From Macrostomum lignano (Eukaryota): a DNA stretch of 49,303 nucleotides. Shown here piece by piece: positions 12,310 to 47,359 of the stretch. The stretch's first letter is position 1, and each line of letters begins with the position of its first letter. Location of the stretch: assembly GCA_002269645.1 (NCBI GenBank), contig NIVC01004347.1:1-49303 (forward strand), written 5' to 3'. The notes beneath the pieces are model-generated. The model was not told the DNA's origin. It did no database searches and saw nothing but the letters and a program-made list of their open reading frames with translations. The translations under genes and the position numbers were made by a program.

Positions 12310-12560
12310 CAAGACAGCAAGCATCCCCCAGATAGCAAGCATCCCCCAGATTGCAAGCATCCCAAAGATAGCAAGCATCCCCCACATAGCACGCATCCCC
12401 CAGAAGGATAGCATCCCCAGATAGCAAGCACCCCCAGATAGCAAGGATCCCCCAGATAGCAAGCATCCCCAAGATAGCAAGCTTCCCCCAGATAGCAAGC
12501 ATCTTCCAGAGAGCAAGCATCCCCCCACATAGATAGCATCCCCAAATAGCAAGCATCCAC
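12310..12560. repeat. 18-bp minisatellite (CAGATAGCAAGCATCCCC)
   Basis: About 13 tandem units. Confidence 0.9.
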
Positions 12561-12649
12561 CAGACAATAAGTAGCTAGTGCGACAATTTCCTTAGCATTA
12601 TAGTGGCTCCTTTAAAATTCGCTTACTTTTACGTTTGAAATTGTGTATC

Positions 12650-15600
12650 TTTTATGTTTGACATGGTGGCTCTTTAATTTTTGACATGGTGGCTCTTTTA
12701 TGTTGACATGGTGGCTCTTTTATGTTTGACATGGTGGCTCTTTACTGTTTGACATGGTGGCTCTTTACTGTTTGAAATGGTGGCTCTTTAATGTTCTACA
12801 TGGTAACTCTTTTATGTTTGATACGGTGGCTTTTTAATGTCTGACATGGTGGCTCTTAAATGTTTGACATGGTGGCTCTTTAATGTTCTTCATGGTGGCT
12901 CTTTAATATTCTACATAGTGGCTCTTTTATGTTCGACATAGTGGCTCTTTAATGTTTGACATGGGGTCTCTTCAATGTTTGACATGGAGTTACGTATATG
13001 TTTGACATGGTGGCTCTTTAATGTTTTACATGGTGGCACTTTCATGTTTGACCTGGTGGCTTTTTAATGTTTGACATGGTGGCTCTTAAATGTTTGACAT
13101 GGTGGCTCTTTAATATTCTACATGGTGGCTCTTTTATGTTCGACATGGTGGCTGTTTTTTGTTCTACACGGTAACTCTTTTATGTTTGATACGGTGGCTT
13201 TTTAATGTCTGACATGGTGGCTCTTCTATGTTTGACATGGTGGCTCTTTAATGTTTGACATGGTAGCTCTTTTATGTTCGACATGGTGGCTCTTTAATGT
13301 TCGACATGGTGGCTCTTTTATGTTCGACATGGTGTCGCTTCAATGTTTGACATGAAGTTACGTATATGTTTTACATGGTGGCTCTTTTATGTTCGACATT
13401 GTGGCTCTTTAATGTTTGACATAGGTTCTCTTCAATGTTTGACATGGAGTTACGTATATGTTTGACATGGTGGCTCTTTAATGTTTTACATGGTGGCACT
13501 TTCATGTTTGACCTGGTGGCTCTTTAATGTTTGACATGGTGGCTCTTTAATATTTGACATGGTGGCTCTTTTATTTTTGACATGGTGGCTCTTTAGTGTT
13601 AGACATGGTGGATCTTTTATGTTTTGCATAGTGGCTCTTTTATGTTCGACATGGTGTCTCTTCAATGTTTGACATGGAGTCATGTATATGTTTGACATGG
13701 TGGCTCTTGTATTTTTAACATGTTGGCTCTTTAATGTTCGACATGGTGACTCTTTAATGTCTAACATGGAGTCACGTATATGTTTGACATGGAGTCATGT
13801 ATATGTCTGATATGGTAGGTCTTTAATGTTTTACATGGAGTCACATATATGTTTCACATGGTGGCTATTTTATGTTTGACATGGTGGTTCTTAAATGTTC
13901 GACATGGTGGCTCTTTAATGTTTTACATGGTGGCACTTTCATGTTTGACCTGTTGGCTCTTTAATATTTGACATGGTGGCCCTTTTATGTTCGACATTGT
14001 GGCTCTTCAATGTTTGACATGGAGTCATGTATATGTTTGACCTGGTGGCTCTTTAATTTTTGACATGGTGGCTCTTTAATGTTTTACATGGTGGCACTTT
14101 CATGTTTTACCTGGTGGCTCTTTAATGCTTGACATGGTGGCTTTTTAATATTTGATATGGTGGCACTTTCATATTTTACCTGGTGGGTCTTTAATGTTTG
14201 ACATGGTACCTCTTTTATGTTCGACATGGTGGCTCTTTAATGTTTTACATGGTGGCTCTTTAATGTTTGATAAGGTGGCTCTTTAATGTTTGACATGGTG
14301 GCTCTTTAATGTTCGACATGGTGGCTCTTTAATTTTTGACATGGTGGCTCTTTAATGTTTGAAATGGTGGCTCTTTAATTTTTGAAATGGTGGCTGTTTT
14401 ATGTTTGACATGGTGGCTCTTTAATGTTCGACATGGTGGCTCTTTAATGTTTGACATGGTGGCTCTTTAATTTTCGAAATGTTGGCTGTTTAATGTTTGA
14501 CATGGTGGCTCTCTAATGTTTGACATGGTGGCTCTTTAATGTTTGACATGGTAACTCTTTTATGTTCGACATGGTGGCTCTTTTATGTTCGACATGGTGT
14601 CATTTCAATGTTTGACATGAAGTTACGTATATGTTTTACATGGTGGCTCTTTTATGTTCGACATTGTGGCTCTTTAATGTTTGACATGGGGTCTCTTCAA
14701 TGTTTGACATGGAGTTACGTATATGTTTGACATGGTGGCTCTTTAATGTTTTACATGGTGGCACTTTCATGTTTGACCTAATGGCTCTTTAATGTTTGAC
14801 ATGGTGGCTCTTTAATATTTGACATGGTGGCTCTTTTATTTTTGACATGGTGGCTCTTTAGTGTTAGACATGGTGGCTCTTTTATGTTTTGCATAGTGGC
14901 TCTTTTATGTTCGACATGGTGTCTCTTCAATGTTTGACATGGAGTCATGTATATGTTTGACATGGTGGCTCTTTAATGTTTGACATGGTGGCTCTTTAAT
15001 ATTTGACATGGTGGCTCTTTTATTTTTGACATGGTGGCTCTTTAGTGTTAGACATGGTGGCTCTTTTATGTTTTGCATAGTGGCTCTTTTATGTTCGACA
15101 TGGTGTCTCTTCAATGTTTGACATGGAGTCATGTATATGTTTGACATGGTGGCTCTTGTATTTTTAACATGTTGGCTCTTTAATGTTCGACATGGTGACT
15201 CTTTAATGTCTAACATGGAGTCACGTATATGTTTGACATGGAGTCATGTATATGTCTGATATGGTAGCTCTTTAATGTTTTACATGGAGTCACATATATG
15301 TTTCACATGGTGGCTATTTTATGTTTGACATGGTGGTTCTTAAATGTTCGACATGGTGGCTCTTTAATGTTTTACATGGTGGCACTTTCTTGTTTGACCT
15401 GTTGGCTCTTTAATGTTTGACATGGTGGCTCTTTAATATTTGACATGGTGGCCCTTTTATGTTTTACCTGGTGGCTCTTTATTGCTTGACATGGTGGCTT
15501 TTTAATATTTGATATGGTGGCACTTTCAAGTTTTACCTGGTGGGTCTTTAATGTTTGACATGGTACCTCTTTTATGTTCGACATGGTGGCTCTTTAATGT

Positions 15601-16270
15601 TTGACATGGTGGCTCTTTAATGTTTGATAAGGTGGCTCTTTAATGTTTGACATGGTGGCTCTTTAATGTTCGACATGGTGGCTCTTTAATGTTTGACATG
15701 GTGGCTCTTTAATGTTTGAAATGGTGGCTCTTTAATTTTTGAAATGGTGGCTGTTTTATGTTTGACATGGTGGCTCTTTAATGTTCGACATGGTGGCTCT
15801 TTAATGTTTGACATGGTGGCTCTTTAATTGTCGAAATTGTGGCTCTGTTTTATGTTTGACATGGTGGCTCTTTAATGTTCGACATGGTGGCTCTTTAATG
15901 TTCTTAATGGTGTCTGTTTTATGTTTGACATGGTAGCTCTTTAATGTTCGACATGGTGGCTCTTTAATGTTTGACATGGTGGCTCTTTAATTTTCGAAAT
16001 GTTGGCTGTTTTATGTTTGACATGGTGGCTCTTTAATGTTTGACATGGTGGCTCTTTAATGTTTGACATGGTGGCTCTTTAATGTTTGACATGGTGGCTC
16101 TTTAAAGTTCGACATGGTGGCTCTTTAATGTTCGACATGGTGGCGCTTTTAGGTTTGAAATGGTGGCTCTTTAATGTTTGACATTGTGGCTGTTTTATGT
16201 TTGACATTGTGGCTCTTTAATGTTTGACATGGTGGCTGTTTTATGTTTGACATGGTGGCTCTTTAATGTT
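12650..16270. repeat. 23-bp satellite (CATGGTGGCTCTTTAATGTTTGA), about 157 units, with higher-order duplications
   Basis: Direct reading. The variant unit CTTTAGTGTTAGAC recurs at 13591, 14856 and 15040 (offsets 1265 = 55x23 and 184 = 8x23). Confidence 0.95.
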
Positions 16271-16989
16271 TAGCATTTTGTGTTTTCAAGGTGTTTTAAT
16301 AAAAAAAACATTTTTCACTACTAAGATTCGAACCAAGGTCGCTACATTAGCATTCCAGTCTGTTTGCATCCGGCTATCTCTTTTCAATTGGAGCACATGA
16401 ACTGTGGCCCTTATAATTCAATACTTATAGCAAGTCGGTTAGAGTAAAAATTTATGACATAATCAATTTCTCAGTCAGCCAGTATCAGTCTCAATTTAAG
16501 TTAGCAATATGGTTACGCAATTTCAATCAAGTCTTGTGTGCGTTTCTGTGGCACTGTTTTCACCTTGTTGTGATGCAATCTTTATCACAATCGGAATTCA
16601 GTCAGTCAGTTTTTTCTCTAGCATTCTTACAATGCAATTCAAGTCAAAAATTTGGCTTGACCTTTGCAAAAAAGCATGTTTTTCGAATATTTAATCCCTT
16701 TAACATTGAGCAATTTCTTAGCCAAGATGCATGTACCGTCCCAGGAAAATTTCTGATCGAATGCTGCAAGTTTGAAGAAAATCGGTTGAGCCAATTTTTC
16801 TGAAATCAATCGCATACCCATATACAGACAACTCATTTTTAGTATATAGGATGCACTATTTAGTCCGCGCGTTGAAGTCCATGCACTTCAACCGAATTTC
16901 AACTTTTAATAACTTCTTAATTGACTCTGCGCTTTTCTTGCCAGATGGAGCTCAAGATGAGGAGAAGGGGAATAGTGCGGGAAAGGAAG

Positions 16990-18571: not shown

Positions 18572-21500
18572 ATGAAGCTGCTGTTTCTATTGGCCTGCGT
18601 AGGCCTTGCCGGTAAGTTTTGTTGCTTCTGCCGAGTGGTCTAGCGCGGCGCTCTGATGTGCCAGCGGCCCAGGCTCGATTCCAAGTGCAGTCACATTAAT
18701 TTGGGGCTGAATTGGAATCTCGGCTTGGCTCTGCTCGTGCAATTAACGCCTTTGATGGCCAACCCCCAAGGCATAGTGCAGTTAGGGCCGCTGTACACTC
18801 CTGTGTGAGTGTGTGCCTGTGCGTTTGACTGCGTACGTATCCGCGAGCTTGTGTGCCTGCTCAGGGGAGTCGGCGGAATGGGCAGCAATGCCTCTCGCCG
18901 GTTGTAAAATTGTCGCTTGAAGTGCGCCAAGGTGTATACAGCCCCTTGCTTTTAAGAAAAAACCGTTGCTTTTTGTTTAACATAAGTCCTATCCGTCCTG
19001 TCCGAATAGCTTACTGCAAGTAGAAAAGCAAGTGTAAGGCAGGAAAAATTCTATTAGTTGGTTTTTTACTTTTACAGCCTCGGCAAGTCTCCGGCCAGCC
19101 GGGCAGCTGCGGGCCGGCACGCCCAGGCAGCTGGAGTACCAGTACGATGCTCAGATTGGCAGCGGCATCGAGGAGATCAGCGGCCAGTTCAGCACTGTCC
19201 GCATGCGCTTCCGCGTCCAGATGCGCACTGACGGTGCGGCTTCCGCAGTCGCCGGCGCCGAGAAATGGACGGTGACCTTCACCGAGGTGAACCTCCGACA
19301 GAGGATCAACGCCACGGAGCAGCTGCCGAAGACGATGCTTCCAATGGCCGAATTCCGCAACCTGGAGGACCCCCTGATGTGGGCGCAGGTGGAGCGGGCT
19401 CTCAAGCAGCCGTTCGCTGTCCTGCTGCGCTCTCGGGAGCAGAAGGTTGCCAAGGTGCTGTTCAACGAGGCCGAGCCATTCTGGAGCGTCAACATCAAGA
19501 AGGGCTTCCTGAGCATGCTGCAGGTAGACTTCGTCCCGAAAATCCCGAAAAAAATGGAGAACGGCCAGTGGACGAAGGAGCAGGACGAGGTAAAGAAGCT
19601 CGCTTGTTGTCAATGACTCGAAGTAGTTTAGATAGTCGCAGTAGTTTAGCAACCGTAACTTGGTTTAGTGAAGAGAAAATTCAAGTACAATGTTACTCAT
19701 AATTAGCTTCTAGCTATGGAGGAACAGTTCTATAGTTAAAATGGGTACTGATTGGATAATACTAGGAAGAGATACAGATAAATATAGACGAAGTCAATCT
19801 TAAGCTTTTGATAAATCAATCGACAATCCGAAATTTCAGATGACAACCGCCGCAGTCTGCCGGACATTCTACACCGCCGACCAGATCGAATACCACGAGT
19901 CCGACTCGCCAGTCTACCGTGTCGCCAAGTCCATCGACTTCAACAACTGCCGCAACCCCATGGACGGCAGCCGCGGCCTGGCCGCCATGTGGAACGGCCT
20001 GCGGCACCACGAGAGCCTCCGGTCAGCTAGCCAGGAGGGCCGCAGCTCCGACTTAGTTAGCGTCAGCAACCTGGCTCAGTACCTGGTTGAAATGGGCGGC
20101 GACCGAGCCAGCCCGCTGATTAGGAAGGGCTGGGCCCGCACCGTGCACACCCTGTCTCCGAGCAGCGACTCCCAGCACGGCACTGAGAAGATCTTCTCCG
20201 TGTAAGTACTGTAATGTGCACTCTGCTACTGTAAATATACGCCTGAAGATTGAATTTCATATGATGCCAGGAAGTTTATGAATGCAACCGGACGAGCATT
20301 TGACACGCCCTAAACTCGCCGTCACGTCCCACCTTGCAGGCAGAAGCTGAAACTCATCGGCAGCGACGATATCTCCGCCTCTGACGTTGAAGCCCTGGAG
20401 GCCCTGACAGAACAGCCCGAGGGACTACGTCTTATCTACCCCCAGGAGGCCAGGAACATCGACCGAGAGGCCATGCTCAACCAGGTCGTTCGCCAGTTCC
20501 GCAAACTGTGGATGACCGACCGCCGTAGCGAGGTTGACATGCCCTCACTGGAGCAAATCGTTCGAATCCTGCGGTTGCACCTCAAGCGCGTTGAAGACAT
20601 TGAAGCCGTTGCCCAGCAAATCAGCTCTCAGGGAGCTCCTGTCCTGCGCGACTTCATCATGGATATCTGCCCGCAGTTGGCCAACCATGGCTCAACCGAA
20701 TTCCTGATGCGCATCGTGAGGGCTCTGGTGAAGACCAGCAGCCAGCCCAGCGCAACTAACATCGCCCAGATGGCTGGCGTGTCCATCGAACACATCCCGG
20801 CAATCTTTGCCAAGCTCAGCATGACCAGCAAGTGGCAGCTGCGCACTCTACGAGTTGTGCTCGACACGGTGAACGACAGTGAATTCCGCTCCAAGCTGAT
20901 GACCGCCGAGCGGATGCCGATCTACTCCGCTGCCTGGCTAAGCCTCGGCGCCATGGTGAACGTGTACTATGGCCGGCAGGCCGGTATCGAGCCCTACCTG
21001 CAGCCGCTGAGCGACGCTGCCGCCCCCTGGGAAGCCCGACGGATCCACGCCGCTAGCTCGGAAGAGTTCCGCCGCGAGTTCATCGCCGAAGTGACCGCGG
21101 GTCTAAGACGCACCGATGCTGGACGCGACCTGGCCTTGAAGGTAGCCAAGAACTGCGGCCTGTTCGAACTGTACGACCAGCTTGGCCCCATCATCCGAAG
21201 CCGTGATGCCAGGAAAGTTTCCGAGCGCGTGCAGGCCGTCTATGCCACGCAGAACATGCTCCGTCGCAACAGTCTGACCCGCGTCACCGCCGAAGACGCC
21301 AGGAGTGTCGCTCAAGAGGAGAAGTACATCCGAGAGGACAGCGAGTACAGGCGCCACTTCGAGGCGGTCAGCAGCCGAATTCACGCCGACCTGATTGCCT
21401 GCTTCCGCAACGCCCGCGAAGATCCGGAGCTGAGAATCGCTTGCTACCGCGTGCTGATGCAATGCCCCAACGTCAAGCAAACTGTGCTGAACATGCTGGT

Positions 21501-24500
21501 GCAGGCCATTCTGAGCGAGCCGACTCAGCAGGTTTACGCCTATTGTGTCAGCCACATGGCTCAGATTGCCAGCAGCTCTCTGCCTCGCTATGACCGCGTC
21601 CGCCCGACCGTCCAGTCTGTTTTGTCGATGCTGCAGCGCCGGGAGCCAATGGAGCAAGTCTACAGCCGAGTCTTCCACGGCCAGCTGTGGGACGAGCTGC
21701 ACAAACTGGGTCTGACAGTTGAGACCGACATGATCGTCTCTGACAAGTCATTCGTGCCGCGCTGGAGCCACATCAAGATCGAGCACCAATCTATGGGCAA
21801 GAACGTTCCAGCCCTGGAGATCAGCATGCGTACTGAGGGTTTGCAGAGCGTGCTTGCCAAGTTGGTTGGCCCCCGCAGCGCCCTATATGCTGACAGCGTG
21901 GCCAAGCTGCTCAGGCGTTCTGCTCGCAGCCTCGACGCCTCCGTGGACTCCGAGCTTCTCGATATTCTGCCCAGAATGCTGGCTGAGGTGCCGCAATTGG
22001 ATCTGACCTTGGCATTCATGGGATACGATGTTATCTACGTGAAGAGCGTCCGCAAGCTTTCCTCCTCATCCTCCGATGAGCTCAGGAAATCTGGCAAAGC
22101 CGAAGCCATCGTGAAATCGCTGGCGAGCATGGGCAACATTCTCAAGTCATTTGGCAGGCTGTTCTCCATCAGCGCTAACTACGAGCTCCCGACTCCCGCC
22201 GGGTCCATCCTGGACCTCAACTGCTTCATGACGCTTGACTTTAAGCCCGCGGTCACCATTGAGCCCAAGGGCAACAGCGCAAGCAAAAAATCCGGCTACC
22301 AAGTGAAGGCCTCGCTGCCAATCGTTATCAAGGGCTTCAAACGGTTCGGTAGCAATATGCACATCCTTAACCACTATCATCAGTGGCTGACCACTCTGAA
22401 GGTTCTCAAGCAGTCAAGTCAAGAATTCGTCATTCAGATGGACGCTAGCGACGCGAAGCAGCCAGGCTTGAAACTCTTGATGGCCGTGCCCGGCTCCAAG
22501 TCGCCGATCGTGCAATTTAAGAATGCTGCCTACTCTACTTTCACCGAGTCCAACATCCAGTCGGGCAGGATCAGAGTGTCCAACAAAAATGTCACTGTCG
22601 TACACAGGCAGATCCAGAAGCAGAAGCGGTTGGACTTCAGTCCGGTACTGAGCAACCTTTTGGCCCCATTCGGCTACAAGCTGCAGGTGCAGGGCAAGCA
22701 GCACTTCACCGCCGATCTGTACAAGGCTCCATGCAGCCTGCTGTCCGGCCCGTCCGAGTTTACTGTGTTCCTGGAGCCCACGACCGAGGAGGAGACCCGA
22801 CGCACCGTGTTCATCAGCAGCAAGCTGAAGGTTATCGAAGACGAGGAGAGCGCCAAGCCACCCCAGGTGCGTCTGGAGGTGGACAATGTCCGCATCCAGA
22901 GCGACAGCAGCGAGACAATCAAGCAGCGTCTCGTCAGCGCCGTCTTTGAGCCGCGCGACTGGTCGGCCTCTCGGAGGACGTTCCGCTGCAGCCTCCGCTA
23001 CCATCTCGGCCTGCCGTCTAGTCAGCAGGCCAGCGGCTACCAAATGACTGTCAACGGCCAGATTGACCTTCCCGAGGACCTGCCTATGTCGCCCAGGAGT
23101 CTCCCTCTGCGATCCGACGAATGGTTCAATGACAGGCGCCTGCGCATGGAGCTTCGCATCAACGATGAGGAGTCACAAGTAGGCAAAATCGAGGTTCAGT
23201 TCTCTTCCAACCCCGAGCTGAAGAAGCTGTTGGTCGATTCCGGACTGTCCGAGTCCCAGATGAAGAAGATGTTCCCGCGCATCGCTGCCTGCCTGAACGA
23301 GTCCCGCCAAAGCGTCCGGGAAGAGCCGCTGAAGGCCAATCCGCTCTTCACGCCAAGCTGCATCCGCCAGTTCAAGAAGTTCAACAAGCTCAGCCAGGTC
23401 GAGATTGAGATAACCCAGTCGGCTGATTGGTTTATGAACCCGCAAGCCAGCCCACTGCTTCTCGCTGCTATCCAAAAGATCCAGGACTACCTGAAGCCCT
23501 ATTTGACTCTCAGCGAGGCCCAGAGGAGCCATGATGCTAACAAGATCACCATCGTTTCTCGTCCGTCCCCGGTTGACTTCCGCGTGCAGCACCTGAACGT
23601 CACCTGCCCTCACCGCAGGAACGTCTGGCGCTCCATTCAGCTGCCTGCCGTTCCGTTCACCTGGGCTGGTGTCGTGCCCATCGCCACCTCAGCTATGGAC
23701 TACGCCAAGGGCGGCAGGACCAAGTGCAGCCTGCTGCACTCGCACATTAAGACCTTCGACGATGTCGCCTACAGCATCCCCAAGAGCCTGTTCAGCCGGA
23801 TCGCCGAGAATCAATGCCCAATGCTGCTAGCCAAAGATTGCTCGAAAGCCAAGGAATTCCAAGTCCTGGCGCACATTAAGGACGGCAAGAAGTACATCAC
23901 CATGCACCTTAACACCGACTCAAGCCGCCCGTTTGTCATAGAGGTGAGCAAACCAATCAACAGCGACCAGGCCAAGTCCACCGTGAAAGTGAACGGAGTC
24001 GAGGTGGAGCACAGTGAGGAGCCGCGAGAGGAGGTTCAGATCTATAAGCACACTGTCCGCGCTGAGAAGAGCCCGGTGACTGTTGAGATCAGCAAGTACC
24101 GCTACGCAGGCACCGTCATGTACAGCATCAGCAGCAAGCAGCAGCAGGTCAGTCTGCTGGTTGGCGGCAAGAAGCTGCGCACCGTTGAGATCCGGGTCTC
24201 GCCCTTCTATCGCAATCGAATGTGTGGCCTCTGTGGCGACTACGACAGCGAGAAATTCCGCGAGTTCAAAGGTCCCAACTACCACCGAGTGGCCGCCACC
24301 GAAAAGAAAATGATCGAGCAGTATGTCCTGCCTGTGTCCGACAGCTGCCGCATGGACCAGTCTGACAGCTTCGAGCAGGCGCAGAGCATCGAGCTGAGCC
24401 GGCCGAACTACCGTTCTCACTGGTCCTCCGACATGCCCAGGAGGCGATCCAGCTGCCAAATCGTCGCCGGCAAAAAGGTGAAGACCTTCAAGCACGCCGA

Positions 24501-25719
24501 GCTGGAGCTGATGTCCCCAGCGCTGAAGCAGATCGTTCAGGACACCGAGTGCGCTGCCAAGCTAGCCGTGGCCAAGATCGGTGACCAACGCGTCCGCGTC
24601 TTCCTGCACTCCAGCCGCAGAGAGGTTTTGGTGAAGGTCGGCAGCGAATACGAGCAGCGGCTGTCAATGTCTCGTCCAGCTTCCACGGAGCAGACCAGCT
24701 CCCCAGCTCCGTCTGGCGTGGCTGCCCACCTCGAGAAGCGGGCTTCGCAAGCCGCTCTGAGGCTGATGAAAGACGACAACAAAGTCACGATCAAGGTCAC
24801 CCGGGATCAGCGAGTTGTCATCAAGGCCAGCGAGGTGGACGACCGTGAGGACGCCATCTGCGAGCTGTCCCATCCATCCCAGATGTCCCAGGCTGACCGC
24901 AGCAGTGAGAGCGTCTTTGACAGCCTGAAGACTTTCACCGACGCGGAGGAGAGCCCTGTCTGCCGCGAGCAGCTGAGGCGCCGCCTCAACCAGTGCCGCG
25001 TGTCACCCGCCCGCGTCCAGCCGTTCCACGTCCGGGGTGAGTCCGACTGGTGGCAGCCGCGGTACATGGACGCCCAACTGCTGAACCGCCTGGCTCAGAC
25101 CCAGACTCCGCTGATCCTCAGCGCCGACCAGATTGCTGAAGGCTCCGCCGTCTACAGCGTCCAGATGGTGCACGAGCGCCCAGCCGGCAGTGCAGACAAC
25201 GACCAGCTGATCCGACACATCCTGCTGAAGAAGGACCGCGACACCCTCGCCAAAATCAGCATTCCAGCTCAACTGGGCAGCAGCTCTGCCGCCCGCGTCA
25301 GAGTAACCTACCGCCGCGACGGAGCCGAACGCACCGCGGACAGCTCTGCCGAGGAGGACATCGACAGCGACTTCCGCCTGTCTGTCAGTGAGCAGCGCAT
25401 CAGTCTGGTGCACAAGAGCCGCCTGTACCAGCTGGACATTGAGCCGCAGGCTGGCAAGCCGGAGATCACCATCGTGCGGTCGTCCGCTCACCCGAGCTAC
25501 GCCAGAGTTGGTCTCTGCCAGGCGAACCAGCTGGCGGAGGTTCGCGAGCACCACGCCAACCCACGCGCCGTCCTTGTTGGCGCGATGCGCGCCACCGTCC
25601 GCGCCCGCGGTCTCTCCTCAATGCTCAGCGAAGCCGAGATTGTCCGCTACAGCCGCCTGCTCAGCGCCATCGAGCGAGCCGAGGACGAGCCCTCTAGCAC
25701 TGCTGAGGCGCTTTGGTAA
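18572..25719 (+). CDS. Vitellogenin/apolipophorin-type large lipid transfer protein, about 2097 aa; exons 18572-18611, 19078-19589, 19840-20201, 20340-25719
   Basis: Signal peptide MKLLFLLACVGLAA; splice phases 1,0,2 close correctly. Vitellogenin_N-type motifs (YQYDAQIGSGI, WSVNIKKGFLSMLQ, AKSIDFNNC, ELRIACYRVLMQCP, QQVYAYCVSHM, SFVPR...LEISMRTEGLQ). Canonical VWD at about 23725-24250 (CSLLHSHIKTFD...LAKDCS...RNRMCGLCGDYD). Exact subfamily not assignable by eye. Confidence 0.9.
18625..18910 (+). mobile_element. tRNA-derived SINE family A in intron 1 of the vitellogenin-like gene
   Basis: A-box-like TGCCGAGTGG and B-box-like GGCTCGATTCC, then GCCAACCCCCAAGGCA...GGGCCGCTGTACACTCCTGTGTGAG...GGAATGGGCAG shared with other copies. 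Confidence 0.7.
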
Positions 25720-27478: not shown

Positions 27479-30400
27479 TCAGGCTGTGACGCTGTCGTTA
27501 AGCAGCTTCTCGGTCTCCTGCTCCTGAGCCATCCTGCGGGCCTTGCGCGTCTTCCGAGCCGCCAGCTTCTCCTGGCGGAGTTTTGCCGCGGTTTTTTCAT
27601 ACTTAGTCACATTCTCACAATTTGCACATAACCCCACGGTGCTACCATAGGCGGAAAATTGCTTAAAAAATTCACCGGAAAAGTTATTTGTCACAATCGA
27701 CAATCGAGTTATTAAGGATTCCATGGAAGAAAAAATTAAAATTGTACTCGTTCGTTTTAGCTTAAAAAACAATTTTCTGTTTTTACCATAGATTATATTG
27801 GAAATTTACTGCAATGTAATTGAATTCTTTCAAATTGTTGTCAATATGCGTATTAAAGAAGAGTTATTACGAGCTACAATTTAAATCGAAACAAATTCAC
27901 AATTTTTTTCAGCAAGTCCATGAATATTGTATTGTATGCATATTTTAAATCTACTCGAAGCTTAGCACACTGTCTTACATGAAGCAAAACAACTCAAAGC
28001 AGCATGGTGCTGCGGCGTTTCACAAACCCCAAATTTTACAATATAAAAATTATTTTTTATATTCTTTCACCTTAATATCTAACCCCAAACAATGTGAATA
28101 TGTTCTTGATGCTATGAAATTTCGGGTTTGTGAAAGCAACCCTATCGTACAAGGTTTGTATTGCCTTACAATTCAAATTAGAATCGTTACAATTGCAATT
28201 TAATATATAGACTTCAAAGGGGACATTTAGCGGGTTGATTTTCCTGGAGGCTTTGACTACAATAACTGAGTGGGTCGAAAAATTGTGCTACTAAATTTTC
28301 TGACTTCATAACTGTCCAATACTTGCATTGCAGTTCAACTGTTGCAGTTCTGGATTCGCACTTTCCACAAAACGCTCACTAATGGCGACTGTTGTAACAC
28401 CGCACAGCTGCCAGGAGCCTTTCAGCAAAGAGAGGATGCGTGCTCGCCACCTTGTATCTCTCCCAATGCAGGAGGAAGTCGCTGTGCATCGACTCCGTGC
28501 ATTGTTCGCTCCATGGCCCCAGGCCTGTTTTGTCTTTGGCGCGGCAGAAGTCACCGACGTGGTGGAAAATCGCGTGGATTTTTGGACTGATGGAAATGCC
28601 GAGATCGGCATAACTGGTGCGAAATTCCTGAATCGCCTGCTTGAAATTGGGACGCAGCTCACTCCCGAAGCATGACACCACGACCGAGTTCAACGCTCGA
28701 AGGGCGGCAACAAACGGCAGCGCTGCCATCGGGCACATCGCTTCTAGCAGGTCCACGTTGCGCAGCAACTTGCGGCTCGCATTGCCAGTGAAGCTGCCAC
28801 CGTGATGCTTGTCACGTTGGACATTGCAAGCTGCAAGCCAAGCTTCGCTCTCGGGCCACACACCATGCAGACCCTCGTACAGTACATGGACCGCACCGGT
28901 CAGCAGGTGCAGCTCCGGCGGAGGGACAATGTGCAACACCGGGACTTCAACTCCAGCGGAAAAGATGCTGGGCTGGACGACGTTATCGAAGTGCTTAGCT
29001 AGTTGGCGTTCACCACCAGCAGCCAGGTAGGCCTGGTATTTCTCACTGAGGCTGCCAAAGGTCCTTGGCTCGCCGCAGCTGTCAAGGCTCCCTTTATTGA
29101 CGTTGCACCAGGTGCAGGGATGCGAGCTGCTGTGGGCCATCAAGCCGAGCAGGATGTTGGCAAGCTTCAGGTCGCACGCGATGCTGATGTTCGCCGACAG
29201 AAGCTGCAGGCGGCAGCTCTCCCAGAGACACTCCAGGTTCCTGTGGTTCTCCTGTGTGTTGGGAGCGATGCCAAGGATGACGGCCCGATGCACGCCAGTG
29301 TCGAGGAATCGGCGATCAGCCCCCTTCTGCTGCTCCTCACCAGCACACACGCACAGGTCAAAAACGGATATCGAGAGCTTCAAGAACCCACCTCCACCAT
29401 CGATTCCAATTCTGACGACTGTGGAAGCAACATCCATCAGCCGGCGGTTTGCAATCATGCGGCCCAGGAGCTCGACCACATCAGTGCAGACAACGGCCCA
29501 CTGCTCAGCTGGAGTCTGCCTTCCCCTCTCTTCTCGGATAAACGCCAGCTGCTTCGCTTGGAAGAGGTCATCCAGTTCGTGATCCATCTCCCTCAATGTC
29601 TGCCGGATGTTGCTCTGGACAGCTGAGGCGCCAATCGAAGACCGAAGATTTCGAAGTACAACCTCCGTTTTGCGCGAACTGAGGCCCAGCTCACCTTGCA
29701 GATGACGCATATTATCCGCCGTGAAGACCGCTGTTGGCTTCCGAGGCGGCGGATTCACGGCCAGCCTCATTGAGGGTCCAGCGTTGGATGCCAGCACGGT
29801 GATGCCCGAGGCTGTGTCTCCGGAGCCTGAAGTAATAAGTTTCTGCCGCACAATTGTTGTGGCGAGCCGCTCTGGGAATTCCGGGGACGCTTCCTGCAAC
29901 AGGGCATGCGCATTCTGCAGTCTTGTGGGTCTGTTGCATGTGTGCGGCTTGCCCCTGCCAATAGGACTGATGCAGAAGGAGCAGACCTTGACCATTTCGG
30001 GCTTGGGCGTTGTAGCCTCGTCCGCCGTCAAACTCGGCCGCCCAACAGACCGCTTTGGGACGTTGGCTTCTGGAGGATGGACTCTGCATCTGGCAGTGCT
30101 GCAGATCTTACAGTCGCATCCATCTTGGCCCACTGATCGGGTCACCGGCAGTGGCTGCACGTCCCTGAAGTCATACATCGGTGGCACATCAGCCCGTTGG
30201 CCCTTCTCCAGCTGCTGCAGAGCGAATCTGCACGTGCCACAAATTGCCTTGGGAACGCGATTATCGTGCAGATCGTAGAGCCAGCCACTGTGCCGATTGA
30301 TGATGGCCAGCATCCAGGGCGTAACGGATCGCAACTCTTTTGCCTTCGAAAAGCACAAAATGCAGATCCGATTGAGGCAATCTTCGTGTGACAGTGGCAT

Positions 30401-33400
30401 GACAAAAACTGTGTACACACAAGCACAATCGTTGCAACTAAATGTTTGGATGAAACACTTTTAGACAGAGTTGGACAACAAAACCTCTTCAAACGGGACC
30501 TCCTTACGTTTGAGGTTTGACGTTTATATTGATGAAAAACATAAATGAGCACGATGGCATTACAAGACTGAGGGTGGTTCGGCGAGTGCTTGGTGCAAAG
30601 AGCACACACCAATGTACAATATCATACTTTGTATGTACAGCTCAGGAAGAGAGAGAGCAAGCCACAGCGTACGAGTGCTTACCTACGTATGTAGAATGGT
30701 GGAGGGATTGGCTGAGGGTAAAGCTTTGGGTCTGGGCGGGCTGGGTAGATCTGAACCAGTGACTCATCCGAACAGGGTGAGTACGAGTATAAAGGCTCAT
30801 TCACAACGCCATCAAACAAGCAACCATACTCACATGACTTACGTACAAAGGGATGAAAAACTATGCAAATGTCGTGTGATCACTTGAAATTTGGTCTCGT
30901 TTGACGGTGGTGTGAATGGGCCTTAAGACTCTCTTGTGGTAGGCCCATCCAAGTCAAATGTGTAGCTTTTAGGCATCAACCAATCATTGATGAATATCAG
31001 TAACATGTTTTTTAATGCTTGCCTTTGATCCTGGACTCAATCGAATTGATTTCTAAACAGTACGGTGATACTTTGCTTTTTTATTAATTCGTCTATGGTA
31101 AAAACTGAAAATAGCACTTTTTGAGCTAAAACGAACAACTACGATTTTTATTTTTTCTTCAAACGAATCCTTACTAATTCGAGTATCGATTGTGACAAAT
31201 AACTTTTCCGGTGAATTTTTTTAGCAATTTTCCGACTATGGTAGCACCGTGCCCAATGCTCATTACCCAATGCACATTGCCCAAATGCATATTACACTAA
31301 CCACTTCACGTATGCAAATCTGGGTTGTAAGCATAGCATAATCTTAATAACAATGAAAACTACGATTTCCGGGAATTATAAACACTATCGGTAAAAACTC
31401 ACCTGCAGTCCACGCTCCACTCGAGTCCTGTTCAGCTCCTGAGCTCGCTGGTACTCCTCCATGTCGATCTCGTATTGCTTCTTGATCGAGTCGATGTCGC
31501 CTATTGAAATGAAATTGTCGGACGAGAGAATCCAGTTTAACAGGCTGAAAGATTTCTGCTTTCTAAGGACACACTGTGGGCGCATTGAGGGTGAGAGCTG
31601 CTAGACACCCTATCACAGCAGGGTGAACTATGGAACTAACCGCTGCCAAAAATTGTGTCCACAAGAGGGTGTTGTGGACACCCCGGTGTAACCCATTCGG
31701 CGACATCGCCCCACAATCGCCTCACTCTGTGCCTTGGGGGTTGGCTCCCATGGGTGTGAAGCGCACGACAACCCCCTGGAAAATTTTCGAGCAGAAGCCC
31801 CAAATGAACACGTTTGCGCACGGAATCGAACCAGGGGTCGTGGACTCAGACGCATTTACCACTGAGCTGCTCCGCCCCCTAACCCGGGCCAATTCGGCTT
31901 AACTTGCAGCGCTGGCAGGCCCACTCGGTTTGCAATAGACAGAAAGTTGCAAATTTTATTGCATTGCACTGACCGAACAGCTGATCCTGGCTGGGCGGCG
32001 GTGCCAGATCCTTCAGAGACACCGCGTCAATCTTTGGCATGGACTCCATTGCTGATGCCTGCGGCGTCTCCGCGCTGCCCTCGCCTTCAGCCGCAGCCTC
32101 ATCGTTCGATTTCTCCTTGCCCTTTCTGCTCTTCTTCGATCTTTTCTTTGAGCCTGCGATCTCCGGTGTCGCTTCGATGCCCATCGGGCTGGGCTGGACT
32201 CCCTCCGGCTGCACTACCTGGACATTCGTCATCAGCTTCTGCATCTCGTCCTGGTTCAGAGTCTCCAGCTGCTCTTGCAGACGCCTGGCGTCGGTTAAAT
32301 TGGCATCTGAAAAATTTTCCCATTTTTTAGTTTCTTATTGTTTTGCAAAGAAGCTTAGCTTTCTATTGCAAATTCTAACAAAGAGTTTCTAAGGAGGACT
32401 ATGAGAAAATGGCAAAATGACAGCTGGAAGAGTCTGGAAGGAGTGACTTATCTAATCCCATATAGAGAGGCTGGCTGCTCATCTACTCCCATATAGAAAG
32501 GCCGGTTGCTCATCTACTCCCATATCGAGAGGCCGGTTGTCTATCTAATCCCATATAGAGAGGCCGGTTGTCTATCTAATCCCATATAGAGAGGCTGGTT
32601 GCACATCTACTCCCATATGGAGAGGCCGGTTGCACATCTACTCCCATATGGAGAGGCCGGTTGCCAATCTAATCCCATATAGAGAGGCCGGTTGTCTATC
32701 TAATCCCATATAGAGAGGCCGGTTGTCTATCTAATCCCATATAGAGAGGCCGGTTGCACATCTACTCCCATATGGAGAGGCCGGTTGCACATCTACTCCC
32801 ATATGGAGAGGCCTGTTGTCTATCTACTCCCATATAGAGGGGCTGGTTGCTCATCTAATAGCAGGAAGGAACCCTATAATTGAAGGGCCGTAAGAGTGAC
32901 CTACACGTTTGACCAGCTGATAAAACCCCCAACATATGAAGAGATGCTGAATTCTCAAACCTTCATCTAGCCCAGCCTCTGCTGCAGCCTGCGGTCCCAG
33001 TAGCTCCTCCAGTTTCTGTTTAATCAGCCGAACTCGTTCGGTTCGCAGCAGCCGCTTTTTCTCAAAGAGCTCCTCGGTGGCTGACAGCAGGTCCCGGTCG
33101 ATGGTCTTGTTGATCACCTTAATTTGGAGAAATAATGCCACTGGTGATGCTGAGTGGACTGCGTCGAGATGAGACTCAGGGGGCGAGGAAGGCCATTCTC
33201 GTGTAGGGGGGATTCCTGGAGAGGGGTGATTCCCAGGGAGGGGGTGATTCCCAGGGAGGGGGTGATTCCCAGGGAGGGGGTGATTCCCAGGGAGGGGTGA
33301 TTCCCAGGGAGGGGCACCCAGGGAGGGGGTGATTCCCAGGGAGGGGTGATTCCCAGGGAGGGTGATTCCCAGGGAGGGGGTGATTCCCAGGGAGGGGTGA

Positions 33401-36400
33401 TTCCCAGGGAGGGGTGATTCCCAGGGAGGGGTGATTCCCAGGGAGGGGTGATTCCCAGGGAGGGTGATTCCCAGGGAGGGGTGATTCCCAGGGAGGGGTG
33501 ATTCCCAGGGAGGGTGATTCCCAGGGAGAGGTGATTCCCAGGGAGGGGGTGATTCCCAGGGAGGGGTGATTCCCAGGGAGGGGTGATTCCCAGGGAGAGG
33601 TGATTCCCAGGGAGGGGTGATTCCCAGGGAGGGGTGATTCCCAAGGAGAGGTGATTCCCAGGGAGGGGGTGATTCCCAGGGAGGGGGTGATTCCCGGAGA
33701 GGGGTGATTCTTGGAGAGGGGAGATTCTTGGAGAGGGGAGATTCTTGGAGAGGGGTGATTCTTGGAGAGGGGTGATTCTTGGAGAGGGGAGATTCTTGGA
33801 GAGGGGAGATTCTTGGAGAGGGGAGATTCTTGGAGAGGGGAGATTCTTGGAGAGGGGAGATTCTTGGAGAGGGGAGATTCTTGGAGAGGGGTGATTCTTG
33901 GAGAGGGGTGATTCTTGGAGAGGGTGATTCTTGGAGAGGGGAGATTCTTGGAGAGGGGAGATTCTTGGAGAGGGGAGATTCTTGGAGAGGGGTGATTCTT
34001 GGAGAGGGGAGATTCTTGGAGAGGGGAGATTCTTGGAGAGGGGAGATTCTTGGAGAGGGGTGATTCTTGGAGAGGGGAGATTCTTGGAGAGGGGAGATTC
34101 TTGGAGAGGGGAGATTCTTGGAGAGGGGAGATTCTTGGAGAGGGGAGATTCTTGGAGAGGGGAGATTCTTGGAGAGGGGAGATTCTTGGAGAGGGGTGAT
34201 TCTTGGAGAGGGGTGATTCCCGAAGAGAAGTGATTCCTGGAGAGGGTGATTCCCAGAGAGGGGTGATTCCCGGAGAGGGGTGATTCCCGGAGAGGGGTGA
34301 TTCCCGGAGGGGGTGATTTCCGTGTTGGGGTGATTCCTGAGAAGGCGTGACAAGCTGTGTTACAGACCGTGTCGAACCACTGCAGCAGGGCGCCAGCCCG
34401 CTGGAACATGGCCCGGTAGACAGACATGGCGTGCATGTGCCGGTCCAGCGTGGCCACGTCCGTGAAGATATTACTGGTCGCTCGCTCCAGCGTGACCACC
34501 TGAAGCGTCGGAAATTGTTAGTTGTTGTTGGTTTGTTATAATCATATTTAAAAAGATACGTGTACTTCAATAAACCGGATTTCCGGATTGACAATTCGTT
34601 ATTGATTTTTTAAAATAATTTTAATTTTCAATTTTTAGAAACTTTGGTCAATTATGGATAGTTTTGCTTGAAGCCGAATTTCCGGATTGGCGGGTCGTTC
34701 TTGATTTGTTATAATTTTCTGTCCTTTTTTAGAGATCGAAATTCCTTAGCGATTGCTCCATTGCGATATCGTTCCGTGTAACCTTTATTGTTATTTTCAA
34801 AATTATGAGACTATAAGGTTTCTTAGAAACCGATTTAGTTAAATTAAAATCCAGCATTTTTTCATAACCTTGATAAATATTTTATCTTAGATTTTTTCGC
34901 TATATTGCTCACCAGATATTACCTTTTATGAACTAATTTCCGAGCTTGTAAACGCATTTATTCTATATAGTAAAATTTAATTGTCAAATATCAGCTCACC
35001 TCATCAAGCTTGCAATAAGGAAAATCGATGCCCTTCAAATAGTTCTGGCTGTTGCGCAAATTGGCGCAGGCTGCCACCAGGTAATTGCGCGTCTCCGTGG
35101 CAACCGCGTAACGCCGCTGCATATCCCTGTGCGAGGCGCGCGGGGCGGCTGATTGACTCATTGAGCAAAGAACTAATCGGTAATTGTATGTAAGTAGTAC
35201 TAGTAAAAGTACATATAAAGTGGAAGAATGAGAGATCTAGAGATGTCGAAGAAGATTTAATATTTTGCGTTAAGGTTGCTTACTTTTTGTAATGGGATCT
35301 GATTGATTGATTAATTAATTAATTGATTACACCTGCCCTAATGATGGGCAGATGTGCAACCGACAGCTCAGCCGCAGCTATTGCGCGGCGCATCTGAAGG
35401 CTGCGTACGGCTGTTCAGTCCAAGGACTGGGGGGTCGCCACACACACCCTCAATTACCCAAGCTAATGCTGGCACCCATTTTACAGCTGGGTGAACTGAA
35501 GTAATACAGAGTTGTGTCTTGCTCAAGGACACAAATTGTTCCGAGTGGGATCGGGAATCGAACCCCCGACGCTCTAACCACTAGGCTACAATCCCCTCAT
35601 TAGGCTTAGGATGAGAAATCTTGACAGCTGGTTTCTGAGTTGGAAATTTATGACACCGATGTGTATATGCAAATTAAAGGAAGTATGACAACTGAATCTG
35701 ACTCACTGAGGCGGCATGCAGCCGCAGGTCTCCCACTGCTTGACGCCGTGGCCCAGCTGGGCGCAGGCGTGGTGAATCAACAGACGGCCGGCCTGCCAGC
35801 GGGCCTTTGCCGCCGCGATTCTCTGCTGCCTGTCGCTGGTGGCGTCGTGCTCCCGTTCCAGCCGGAACTCCAGCTCGCTGCCGTACTTGCCGTCGAAAAT
35901 GGCAGCTGCAGGTTTGGAGTGATTTCGTTTCTTATCTAGAGAAAACGGTTTCCACTGCTCACTAACGGGGGCAGGGCGAAATTGGCAGAGGAGGCTGTCG
36001 TGCGATCCACAGCCATGAGGGCCGACCCCCCAAGGCACAGAGAGTGTACATGCCTGACGATTAGAAAGTCAGGGCCGATGTACACCCTGTGTGAGCGTGT
36101 GTACGAGTGGGCAGAATTGCCTCAGTGCAGGTGCCCACAAACCTGCGAATATTTATTTCATATCCACTCGTATGCGAGTAATACACAGTACAAAGTTTAT
36201 AAAAGATCGTCTATTGAAGAGTAGTTATCCACAGGTGAGGCTCTGGCTCAGCAGTTAAGACCAAGTTAAGGACTCAGAAAGGGATCGTTTACTGTCACAT
36301 CTGGACACAGATATAGAGCTCAGAAAGCAGCTTGATAAACTTGTGAAACCCATGCTCACTTCGAATCGTCCTCGGATTGAAGCATAGAAGATGAGAGAAT

Positions 36401-40803: not shown

Positions 40804-43800
40804 ATGCAGCGAGAAGACACGGACGTTAGCGAGGTATCGACCGACAGGACGCTGGAGCTTCAGTCAGCGACGCCGAGGCAGCAGCAGGCGAAGCCGAACG
40901 GAACTGCGCCCGATTCTGCCACCGCTGATGTCACCAGCGATGAGGAGAACGAAATCATCCAGGAGCTGAAGGAAGAAATTAAGCGCAAAGTTCGAGAGGA
41001 TATCAAGGTAAAATCTACGTAAAGTGTAGCATCCAATAAAGTATGCTTAATAAGTAGGTTACTCTAATCAAGCTTTAACTTCGTATTTTAACACAATGAA
41101 ATTAATGGCGATCACTCTAGTCTGTAAAAGTCTTCCTGTTTCTTGTGTACTATTAGTGCAGTCAGTAATCCAATCGCACAACTTTTTAATTGTCAGCTGC
41201 TGGCTATAGCTAGATATTGCAATGTGCTCGTAAAAATCCAGTTGTTCGTATTTGAAGCACTTAAACTGATGCATAAATTTGCTTATGTTTATTGTTCACA
41301 TGTAATAACTGACCTGGCCGAATGAGCTGTGACCTGAACTGACCACCCAAAGGGGCAGAGCAGCACAGCCGTAAACGCGTCCGAATCTCGCGCCACGAAC
41401 CCTTGGTTCGATTCCGTGTGCAAACACATTATTTTGAAGGCCTGGCGCTAAACTTGGCATGGGAGGCTTTCGTGCGATTCACATCCATGAGGATCAGCCC
41501 CCAAGGCACAGAGAGTGTACATGCCTGACGATCAGAAAGTCAGGGCCGCTGTACACCCTGTGTGAGCGCGCGTGCCTGCGTACAGTATTGGCGCACTTGT
41601 GTGTGCTCAGGAGTCAGCGGAATGGGCAGGATTGCGTCAGACCAGGGCAATTATCATTATCAAATCGAACACCCGCAGGATGAGCTGGCCAGGTACGATC
41701 TGAAGAATCTGTCCAGCCGGACTGAATCCGCGGCCTCCAGCGCCCGCGACCAGTCGGACCCCAACGGCCTGCTGCCGGAGCGGGACGCCAAGTACACCGA
41801 GGCCTACCAGCGGATGCTGAAGCTGGACAAGATTCTGCGGAAACGGATGGCCAAAGAGCGAGAGGTCAAGCGGCAGAGAATTATGCTGGAGAAAAGGTTG
41901 GAGACTCGCATTGGTGCAGTCCCTCTTCGATTCCGCATTCCATCCCTCTAATGCTGCTCCCAATCCGCTCTTCGTAGATTTCATCTCTAATGCGACCTAA
42001 AGTCCCCTCCGATTCCATTCTTAGTCCGCTCTGTACAACTCTCCGAATCCGCCCTCAATCCGCCCTTTTCCCCCCTATTCCGCCCTCAATCCCCTCTCCA
42101 TCCCCATTCCGCCCTCAATCCCCTCTCCATCCCCAATAGTCCGCCCTCAATCCCCTCTCCATCCCCAATAGTCCGCCCTCAATCCCCTCTCCATCCCCAC
42201 TATTCCGCCCTCAATCCCCTCTCCATCCCCCATTCCGCCCTCAATCCCTTCTCCATCCCCACTATTCCGCCCTCAATCCCCTCTCCATCCCCCATTCCGC
42301 CCTTAATCCGCTCTCCATCTCCCCCTATTCTGCCCTTAATCCACCCCCAAATCACCTGCCAACCGTCGCCTCTGCCTCGCCGCGCTCCCAGGATCAAGGA
42401 GGAGCTGGAGCAGCTGCGCACCGAGGCAACCTCCAGGCGGACAAACGACGAGATGAGCAACACCATGAAGTTCCTGGCGCTGACGCCCAGCGACGGCGGC
42501 ACCAGACGGGACGGGGATTCGGCCCTGCAGGATGAGTACAGCGATGAGCTGCCGCACGAGCCGGTGTTCCCCACCGAGTACCTGTTCGACGAGGCACAGG
42601 AGTCGGCTGGGGCCAACGAGGAAGGCACCGAAGTCGGTGGCGGAACCGCCCGGTCCGGAAAGACGAGCCGGAAGCAGCAGCAGCAAAAAGACGGCCGGAA
42701 GAAGCAGGCGGCCGGTTCGGGCGCGGCAGCGAGCGGCGACTCGTCGAAGGATTTTATAAAGCGAAACATTGAGGTTAGTAACAGAAGAGTAGTCGGATGC
42801 TTCCTTAGCAACAGAGACATGAGTAGTCGGACGCTGCCTTAGCAACAGAAGATGAGTAGTCGGTCGCTTTCTTAGCAACAGACAGATGAGTAGTCGGACG
42901 CTTTCTAAGCAACAGGGAGATGAGTAGTCGGATGCTTTCTTAGCTACAGTGAGATGAGTAGTCTGATGCTTCCTTGGAAACAGGAAGATGAGTAGTCGGA
43001 TGCTGCCTTAGCAACAGGAAGATGAGTAGTCAGATGCTTCCTTAGCAACAGAAGATGAGTAGTCGGACGCTTCCTTAGCAACAGAAGATGAGTAGTCTGA
43101 TGCTTCTTTAGCAACAGAAAATGAGTAGTCTGATGTTTCCTTAGCAACAGGAAGATGAGTAGTCGGATGCTTTCTTAGCTACAGGGAGATGAGTAGTCGG
43201 ATGCTTCCTTAGCAACAGGAAGATAAGTAGTCGGACGCTTCCTTAGCAACAGAAGATGAGTAGTCGGACGCTTCCTTAGCAACAGAAGATGAGTAGTCTG
43301 ATGCTTCCTTAGCTACAGGGAGATGAGTAGTCGGATGCTTCCTTAGCAACAGAAGATGAGTAGTCGGACGCTTCCTTAGCAACAGAAGATGAGTAATCTG
43401 ATGCTTCCTTAGCAACAGGGACATAAGTAGTCAGACGCTTCCTTAGCAACAGGGACATGAGTAGTCGGATGCTTCCTTAGCAACAGGGAGATGAGTAGTC
43501 GGATGCTTTCTTAGCAACAGAGGATGAGTAGTCGGACGCTTCCTTAGCAACAGGGACATGAGTAGTCGGATGCTTCCTTAGCAACAGGAAGATGAGTAGT
43601 CGGATTCTTTCTTAGCAACCGAATCAGCTTTTTTGCATTCGTCCTTATCAACAATAAGGTTGACAGATTAAAATAAATAAAATCATGGCCAAAAGCTTCA
43701 CAATTCCTCAATCTAAATTTCACAGCTGGCAGCAGCTTCAAACGACGTCGTTGCCATGACGCCCGAGGAGAGAGAGCGGCTTGACTCGTTGCTGCGCGAT

Positions 43801-47189: not shown

Positions 47190-47359
47190 GGATATCCCGT
47201 CTGGCTGAGCATGAGCTCAGCAGCCATGCAGTTAGAGCTCCATCTCATACGTGCGGTGTTTCCTGTTCGGAGGGGGAGATGAAGATGAAAGGACTCGAGT
47301 GAGGATTCTGATGGCAGTTAAAGGTGCTGTGAGATTTGGGAAGTAAACAGACAGAATGC

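Follow-up and report, generated by a model that had tools for sequence, protein, structure and literature searches.

A probable Chapaev transposon with a RAG1-like transposase core in Macrostomum lignano, and its empty site

A 49,303 nucleotide stretch of the Macrostomum lignano genome (GenBank assembly GCA_002269645.1, contig NIVC01004347.1, positions 1 to 49,303 of the forward strand; hereafter the window, which supplies all coordinates unless otherwise stated) carries a 3,617 bp transposon at 27635-31251. Our analysis indicates that this is very probably an autonomous cut-and-paste Chapaev element of the sub-group that contains Chapaev-1_AA and Chapaev-1/2/5_HM. The wider group is called either CMC-Chapaev or the Chapaev clade of the extended Transib superfamily (Kapitonov & Koonin, PMC4411706), and the named relatives, from Aedes aegypti (Chapaev-1_AA) and Hydra (Chapaev-1/2/5_HM), are Repbase entries (Kapitonov & Jurka 2007) aligned in Additional file 5 of PMC4411706. 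Because its N-terminus is only about 26-33% identical to those of Chapaev-1_AA/HM, the element represents a distinct family; it is a new family-level member of a known sub-group, and the family may already be catalogued in Repbase or Dfam. An earlier note on this DNA, made by a model from the sequence alone, had described an intact autonomous transposon of the Chapaev or RAG1/Transib-related kind, and to that extent our results support it.

Structure and boundaries of the element

The element opens with CACGGTG and closes with CACCGTG, and thus has the 5'-CAC...GTG-3' termini that are invariable in Chapaev. The 16-mer CACGGTGCTACCATAG forms both termini and matches the window twice, against 0 matches expected by chance. 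Long terminal inverted repeats (TIRs) of about 158 bp with near-identical tips, as the earlier note had reported, were recovered as arms of 158 bp on the left (27635-27792, forward strand, tip CACGGTG) and 160 bp on the right (31092-31251, reverse strand). The arms agree at 64/66 of the outermost positions, and over their whole length (~160 bp) at 142 of 163 columns, with 19 mismatches and 2 gap columns (88% identity). The octamer TACCATAG occurs five times in the window (0.69 expected), and four of the copies are placed mirror-symmetrically inside the TIRs, where they bracket each arm at +9-16 and +150-157 from the tip. The outer and inner copies lie at 27643-27650 and 27784-27791 (both on the forward strand) in the left arm, the inner one marking the inner edge of the TIR, and at 31236-31243 and 31093-31100 in the right arm. 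From their position, these paired motifs are plausible candidates for transposase-binding sites.

Between the arms lies a single open reading frame (ORF) on the reverse strand (28379-30400), encoding 673 aa and a stop; no RAG2-like partner ORF accompanies it within the element. The frame is free of stops, as had been claimed, and because its product can be aligned over its whole length with 40 relatives, no intron needs to be invoked. The ORF stands out in base composition, with a GC content of 57.5% against 33-41% in the non-coding parts of the element. Downstream of it, on the same strand, is an AT-rich non-coding segment corresponding to the 3' untranslated region (UTR) and subterminal sequence (27793-28378; 33% GC for 27635-28378 as a whole), and upstream is a non-coding segment presumed to hold the promoter and 5' UTR (30401-31091, reverse strand; 40.7% GC for 30401-31251).

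The boundaries could be fixed independently of the TIRs, because the public M. lignano assembly contains an empty site. In contig NIVC01000562.1 (locus L066) both flanks align and the element is absent: alignment of the left flank stops at window position 27636, that of the right flank starts at 31252, and in L066 the two meet at 19646-19649. Over 300 bp, the flanks are 98.7% (left) and 99.7% (right) identical to L066, which is therefore an empty site in an allele or a very recent paralogue. Joining the flanks in silico makes the surrounding 14-bp tandem array grow from 3.1 to 3.7 copies. The proposal that excision restores a local repeat thus held, with the empty site at the exact position, and the search for an empty allele that the earlier note had suggested was successful.

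Target-site duplication

The trinucleotide CCC stands directly outside both ends of the element (27632-27634 and 31252-31254), within flanks that read AACCC|...|CCCAA; the right-hand copy also begins the 14-bp tandem array (31252-31295) that received the insertion. An exact 3-bp CCC target-site duplication (TSD) had been claimed on this basis. The two flanking CCC copies are real, but relative to the empty allele only 2 bp are duplicated. The empty allele reads ATAA-CCCC-AATGC and the occupied one ATAA-CCC|element|CCC-AATGC, such that the empty allele is regenerated exactly when 2 bp are deleted along with the element, whereas with 3 bp the product lacks one C. The net duplication against the only empty allele at hand is therefore 2 bp (CC, the inner two bases of the left CCC), although the length at insertion is uncertain. 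A 3-bp TSD needs a pre-insertion allele with CCC, that is, a homopolymer indel; the other units of the 14-bp array read CCC, and homopolymer indels are common between the window and L066. Alternatively, a past excision could have left the extra C behind in the empty allele as a footprint.

A 4-bp TSD is excluded for the M. lignano element, as the complementary termini forbid it. TSDs of relatives were tallied where both ends could be defined by gapped BLAST; many metagenome contigs break within the long TIRs. Five relatives have 4-bp TSDs (AAAA, for which 3 bp is also possible, CACC, TTAT, TGGT and GACT) and a sixth has none. The short duplication is thus unusual for the lineage, and either the M. 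lignano family differs in its TSD or this junction is atypical. The Chapaev TSD is described as '3- to 4-bp' in the literature, and this was the only statement returned by our literature search for papers giving a 4-bp Chapaev TSD.

The N-terminal zinc domain places the transposase in a known sub-group

The N-terminal zinc-finger region (residues 1-160; 29921-30400, reverse strand) contains a module of the Chapa/NZD type with ligands H5, C13, C16, C54, C57, C95, C97 and C100, followed by a CCHC module with ligands C140, C143, H153 and C155; the ligands are kept in 120-139 of 143 relatives. A family hidden Markov model (HMM) of the first ~165 residues was scored on the reference N-termini of Additional file 5 of Kapitonov & Koonin 2015 (PMC4411706). 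The highest scores were those of Chapaev-2_HM (69.8 bits), Chapaev-1_AA (52.2 bits), Chapaev-5_HM (41.4 bits) and Chapaev-1_HM (40.1 bits), followed by two echinoderm RAG1L sequences (23.9 and 16.6 bits). All Chapaev3 references fell below 10 bits, the RING-bearing Chapaev-1/2_BF, NV and ACa below 9 bits, and human RAG1 at 2.5 bits. These scores assign the element to the sub-group of Chapaev-1_AA and Chapaev-1,2,5_HM, and not to Chapaev3. They also agree with the earlier reading of the N-terminal finger as one common to Chapaev and RAG1, which fits the published Chapa/NZD alignment. On the same scores, the N-terminal domain of this sub-group is closer to RAG1L than to other Chapaev sub-groups, a result that leans towards the earlier note. 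The arrangement of one N-terminal His and three C-terminal Cys (H5 with C95/C97/C100) would fit the 'type I', RAG1-like ZFb scheme of a recent preprint (bioRxiv 10.64898/2026.01.24.700457).

Modelled alone, the N-terminal region gave a pLDDT of 83.7. Foldseek was run against a copy of the Protein Data Bank (PDB) that lacks the RAG1 NZD, and the best five matches were Drosophila ZADs, with non-significant E values of 0.17-0.5. These weak matches agree with the published link between ZADs and the ZFa half of the RAG1 NZD/Chapa domain (bioRxiv 10.64898/2026.01.24.700457).

The transposase core

Pfam returned nothing above threshold for the 673 aa protein, and only weak matches to zf-AD and DUF1280. 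The latter, a C. elegans family of unknown function, matched residues 231-346 (~29363-29710) at E 0.088; on this similarity, DUF1280 proteins may derive from Chapaev-type transposases.

The core (residues ~280-673; 28382-29563, reverse strand) combines an RNase H fold with an inserted zinc-binding helical domain, and is RAG1/Transib-like in structure. An AlphaFold2 model of the transposase (pLDDT 86.9) gave 27 significant Foldseek matches in the PDB, all of them RAG1 core, BbRAGL or HzTransib (E 1.9e-12 to 1.7e-5; TM 0.46-0.57 on the target; ~13% identity), and the next fold was the hAT transposase Hermes at E 0.036. A structure-model comparison of this kind had been proposed in the earlier note. 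As the PDB is not known to contain any CMC structure, RAG1/Transib top matches are to be expected for any Chapaev.

At the level of sequence, Chapaev3 is a far closer match to the core than RAG1 is. The Chapaev3 protein Garfield_BM (taken from the supplement of PMC4079192, and the sole full Chapaev3 protein compared) matched the transposase by BLASTP at E 1e-12 with 21% identity, and hhalign aligned it to our family profile with a probability of 98.4% (E 4.8e-15) across the whole core. The same profile aligned with a 3-sequence RAG1-family profile at 85.7% (E 5.4e-6), and with a single RAG1L sequence at 7% (E 0.005). When the PDB was searched by sequence at E<=10, using phmmer for the protein itself and a profile of 41 sequences, neither query matched a RAG1 or Transib chain, or any transposase at all.

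The motifs C(2)C, LH and H(4)H, described as the CMC signature (PMC4079192), are present as CTWC (429-432), ELH (496-498) and H609-x4-H614, and are kept in 128-143 of 143 relatives. Using mouse RAG1 numbering (chain index + 258), hhalign maps D410, the predicted second catalytic Asp (29171-29173; conserved in 143/143), to D708. It likewise places C429-x2-C432 (29105-29116) on C727/C730, L497-H498 (28907-28912) on L794-H795, H609-x4-H614 (28559-28576) on H937/H942, and E632, the predicted catalytic Glu (28505-28507), on E962; all of these codons are on the reverse strand. As in RAG1, the two Cys follow the second Asp at 19 and 22 residues, and C429/C432 with H609/H614 form a predicted C2H2 zinc site. 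The motif parallels to RAG1 drawn in the earlier note are borne out for CTWC, for H-x4-H and for WSEQCTE. D334, the predicted first catalytic Asp (29399-29401, reverse strand), lies in IDGGGG at the end of the first core strand (327-334), is Asp in 142/143 relatives, and is probably the counterpart of RAG1 D600 in CDGMGD.

The catalytic, zinc and LH residues are kept in 127-143 of the 143 relatives and are all present in the M. lignano protein, as are 108 of 118 strongly conserved family positions. The most notable departure from the consensus is H371 (29288-29290, reverse strand), which is Lys in 130/143 relatives and never His. With every catalytic residue intact, the element is possibly an active candidate.

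Relatives of the transposase

The transposase has 82 close homologues, all from animals and including Hydra, Macrostomum and a sciarid fly, and the family as a whole is very large (10,482 cluster representatives at E<=1e-3). The relatives whose two ends could be defined have CA[C/Y]...GTG-type termini, and many carry TIRs of 130-340 bp, often with 98-99% identity between the arms, so that CAC ends and long TIRs are traits of the lineage. Additional family members are encoded at many JAAUX*/JAAUY* metagenome loci. A relative on a metagenome contig (ENA ERZ26222911, 3379-6664) has 334-bp TIRs that are ~98-99% identical and an intact 677-aa ORF, and resembles a very young copy.

M. lignano itself harbours a second Chapaev-type element (NIVC01000691.1, 3503-6870), 3,368 bp long and with 31% aa identity. 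Its 216-bp TIRs are ~99% identical. Its termini read CAGCGC...GCGCTG rather than CAC...GTG and a TSD could not be recognised, for which reasons the TSD tally excludes this element. The transposable element paper on M. lignano makes no mention of Chapaev or CMC.

Age and copy number

The mismatches between the TIR arms lie inward, with 2/66 in the outer part and 19/97 in the inner part (Fisher p = 0.0016). In simulations of neutral decay at ~6% per arm and site, the ORF stayed open in only 1.7% of trials. Because the mismatches are non-uniform and the ORF rarely survives simulated decay, the asymmetry of the arms was probably inherited from the source copy and predates the insertion. The insertion (or excision) was recent, given that the flanks are ~99% identical to the empty allele. 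The description of the element as young is thus not shown by its TIRs at 88% identity, and recency is better supported by the empty allele.

No second copy is present in the window, and the exact protein had no record in our look-up. In a collection of 15 billion proteins the nearest sequence was 41% identical, and the nearest metagenomic fragments were 54-57% identical.

The host locus

Upstream of the transposon, the ORF at 20473-25719 (forward strand) is a vitellogenin-like exon of 1,748 codons (Pfam VWD, Vit_open_b-sht and Vitellogenin_N) that is 99% identical to M. lignano BOX15_Mlig008746g5. About 1.9 kb separate this vitellogenin-like gene from the transposon downstream, which sits within the 14-bp minisatellite. 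A stop-free stretch on the reverse strand at 27479-27634 continues into the left TIR, and in the reconstructed empty allele it spans the insertion site for 65 codons with a Lys/Arg/Glu-rich tail; it is too short for a gene call, and there is no sign that the insertion disrupts a coding exon.

Minisatellites are unusually dense in the window (49 Tandem Repeats Finder rows), for example at 8003-9012, 10777-11499, 33205-34337, 42783-43619 and 47359-48052, and the 30-bp array at 8003-9012 is one of several whose copy number differs from that in the public assembly. Besides the transposon, the window has another large segment that L066 lacks, a satellite block at 12187-16849 that includes 158 copies of a 23-bp unit (12626-16271); window position 12186 aligns to L066 7644, and 16850 to L066 7643.

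Discussion

Although the assignment to the Chapaev-1_AA/HM sub-group is well supported, several other placements deserve consideration. The earlier note held that the short TSD fits Chapaev3, and an element of that group would indeed share the CAC...GTG termini, the short TSD and the clear core homology to Garfield_BM. Chapaev3 elements, however, have TWA TSDs, TIRs of 11-19 bp and a compact size of ~1.8-2.6 kb in published descriptions (PMC4079192, PMC3014272). Here, CC(C) replaces the TWA expected between A and T, the TIRs are ~158 bp, and the element is 3.6 kb long as opposed to ~1.8-1.9 kb. Identity to Garfield_BM is just 21%, and the Chapaev3 type of N-terminus (C..FCYICG..DQDKxWAPH..REPxDHxxDCYFC) is absent, in keeping with the score of <10 bits on Chapaev3 against 40-70 bits on Chapaev-1_AA/HM. 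These three defining features (TSD, N-terminal domain type and TIR length) rule the assignment out, and we consider a Chapaev3 element very unlikely. More was claimed for RAG1: that the motifs look more RAG1/Transib-like than those of Chapaev3, and that the element may belong to a poorly described intermediate lineage, between Chapaev and Transib/RAG1 and nearer to the RAG1 ancestor than known Chapaevs are. The lead of RAG1 core chains over HzTransib among the structural matches argues for such a lineage, as does the N-terminal profile, which outside its own sub-group scores highest on RAG1L (23.9 and 16.6 bits, with RING-bearing Chapaevs below 9), and the 'type I' ZFb arrangement of H5 with C95/C97/C100 would fit it. 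Nevertheless, the core resembles RAG1 only marginally and Chapaev3 far more strongly (85.7%, E 5.4e-6, against 98.4%, E 4.8e-15), which overturns the first claim, and RAG1/Transib top folds are what any Chapaev should give when the PDB offers no CMC structure. The transposase has no RING finger, the element has no RAG2-like partner ORF, and the sub-group is already part of the Chapa alignment of Kapitonov & Koonin (PMC4411706). That Chapaev cores and N-termini resemble RAG1 has been published as a property of all Chapaevs (PMC4411706; bioRxiv 10.64898/2026.01.24.700457), and an undescribed intermediate lineage is therefore improbable. We give almost no credence to a non-canonical Transib with a 3-bp TSD (of the Nozomi, Hayabusa or Transib-6 kind). 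The CACGGTG termini do recall the heptamer of Transibs and of the recombination signal sequence (RSS), and some Transibs have 3-bp TSDs, but non-canonical Transibs are ~43% identical to HzTransib and give 100% matches in HHpred, whereas neither our protein nor its profile found an HzTransib chain at E<=10. Transibs also lack the NZD/Chapa domain that this transposase has. The PDB sequence searches thus rule Transib out, the fold alone being similar and the canonical 5-bp TSD also absent. Members of RAG1/RAG1L (TransibSU) would share >30% identity over ~600 aa and have an adjacent RAG2-like gene; with ~13% identity and a single ORF, the element is not one of them. The TIRs and the empty site rule out a host-domesticated gene.

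Several observations weigh against an autonomous element of the Chapaev-1_AA/HM sub-group. The TIR arms differ at 12% of positions, and the TSD is 2-3 bp where five of the six relatives with resolvable ends have 4 bp. There is one visible copy and no near-identical protein (best 41%), which gives no sign of recent amplification. Enzyme function might also suffer from N505H and from K371H, at a position where 130/143 relatives have Lys and none has His. The equivalence of D334 and D600 draws on likeness of motif and fold, outside the significant hhalign alignment, and is best read as a prediction. Some of these points would suit an intact-looking copy that is dead or a single-copy relic, with the 'empty site' being the ancestral state of a paralogue or an excision footprint: the two substitutions fall at near-invariant positions, arm identity is 88% where several relatives reach 98-99%, no second copy (in the window) or near-identical protein was found, and one C of the CCCC in the empty allele could be a footprint base added to CCC. 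On the other side, the ORF is open, 108/118 family-conserved positions and every catalytic and zinc residue are kept, and neutral decay at 6% per site would leave the frame open in just 1.7% of trials; the non-uniform TIR mismatches (p = 0.0016) are probably older than the insertion, and the ~99% flank identity implies a recent insertion (or excision). A relic is consequently a possibility that we take seriously without favouring it. Current mobility of the element, which the earlier note had suggested, is plausible, though we think it unlikely that the full proposal holds, namely a currently active low-copy Chapaev family in M. lignano whose staggered cut now spans 2-3 bp in place of the lineage's 4 bp.

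Our data are consistent with a model in which the 673-aa transposase would bind the ~158-bp TIRs, possibly at the paired TACCATAG motifs, through its N-terminal Chapa/NZD-type zinc fingers and the DNA-binding regions of the core. Cleavage at the conserved 5'-CAC...GTG-3' termini would follow, carried out by an RNase-H-fold DDE site (D334, D410 and E632) that the C2H2 zinc site (C429, C432, H609 and H614) and H498 of the LH motif would brace. As the examples of RAG1, Transib and hAT suggest, the chemistry would probably be nick-then-hairpin, and reinsertion through a short staggered cut would generate the 2-3-bp duplication seen here.

To our knowledge, no transposases other than those of Chapaev and of the RAG lineage have an N-terminal zinc domain of the RAG1 type. 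We also know of no Chapaev transposase that has been characterised biochemically, a point made as well in the limitations of the 2026 preprint (bioRxiv 10.64898/2026.01.24.700457). An intact copy that is missing from a ~99%-identical allele, in a host with established transgenesis, makes a sensible choice for a first structure and a first test of activity, and is a possible marker of recent transposable element activity in M. lignano. If the element is active, with its cut shifted to 2-3 bp, it would be the first experimentally tractable Chapaev transposase, and would give a direct handle on a RAG1-type NZD/Chapa domain and a RAG1-like core at work in a free-living transposon. The element leaves current views of RAG evolution unchanged: the relationships that it illustrates are already published, and it is an ordinary new member of its sub-group, not a missing link.

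Comparison with known systems

With RAG1 and RAG1L (BbRAGL and echinoderm RAG1L) and with HzTransib, the transposase shares the core fold and the order and near-identical spacing of the Asp, CxxC, LH, H-x4-H and Glu residues; with RAG1/RAG1L it also shares the NZD/Chapa-type N-terminus, and the element's CAC-initiated ends are akin to the RSS heptamer. It differs from them in its marginal sequence likeness (no HMM match in the PDB, and 86% by hhalign only when a profile is used), in a TSD of 2-3 instead of 5 bp, and in having long TIRs in place of heptamer-spacer-nonamer ends; it also has no RING finger, no NBD detectable by sequence and no RAG2-like partner. The likeness to Drosophila ZADs (Foldseek probability up to 0.96; root-mean-square deviation of 2.1 Å over 63 columns) involves residues ~13-65, the region of the weak Pfam zf-AD match (E 0.013, score 16 against a cut-off of 28). 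It is below significance, and the module sits in a larger multi-zinc domain.

Chapaev3 elements (Garfield, Merrow and Conan) have a homologous DDE core with the same motif order, CAC termini and a short TSD, but differ in their N-terminal zinc domain and TWA specificity, and the M. lignano element has TIRs about 10x longer, is twice as long overall and is 21% identical in protein sequence. The closest system is that of Chapaev-1_AA/HM. The differences there are the ~26-33% identity, in a comparison confined to the N-terminal ~120 aa, and the TSD of 2-3 bp against 4 bp in five relatives of that lineage. In common are the Chapa-type zinc domain with identical ligand spacing (40-70 bits), the lack of a RING finger, the CMC-type core with C(2)C, LH and H(4)H, the CAC...GTG termini, and animal hosts.

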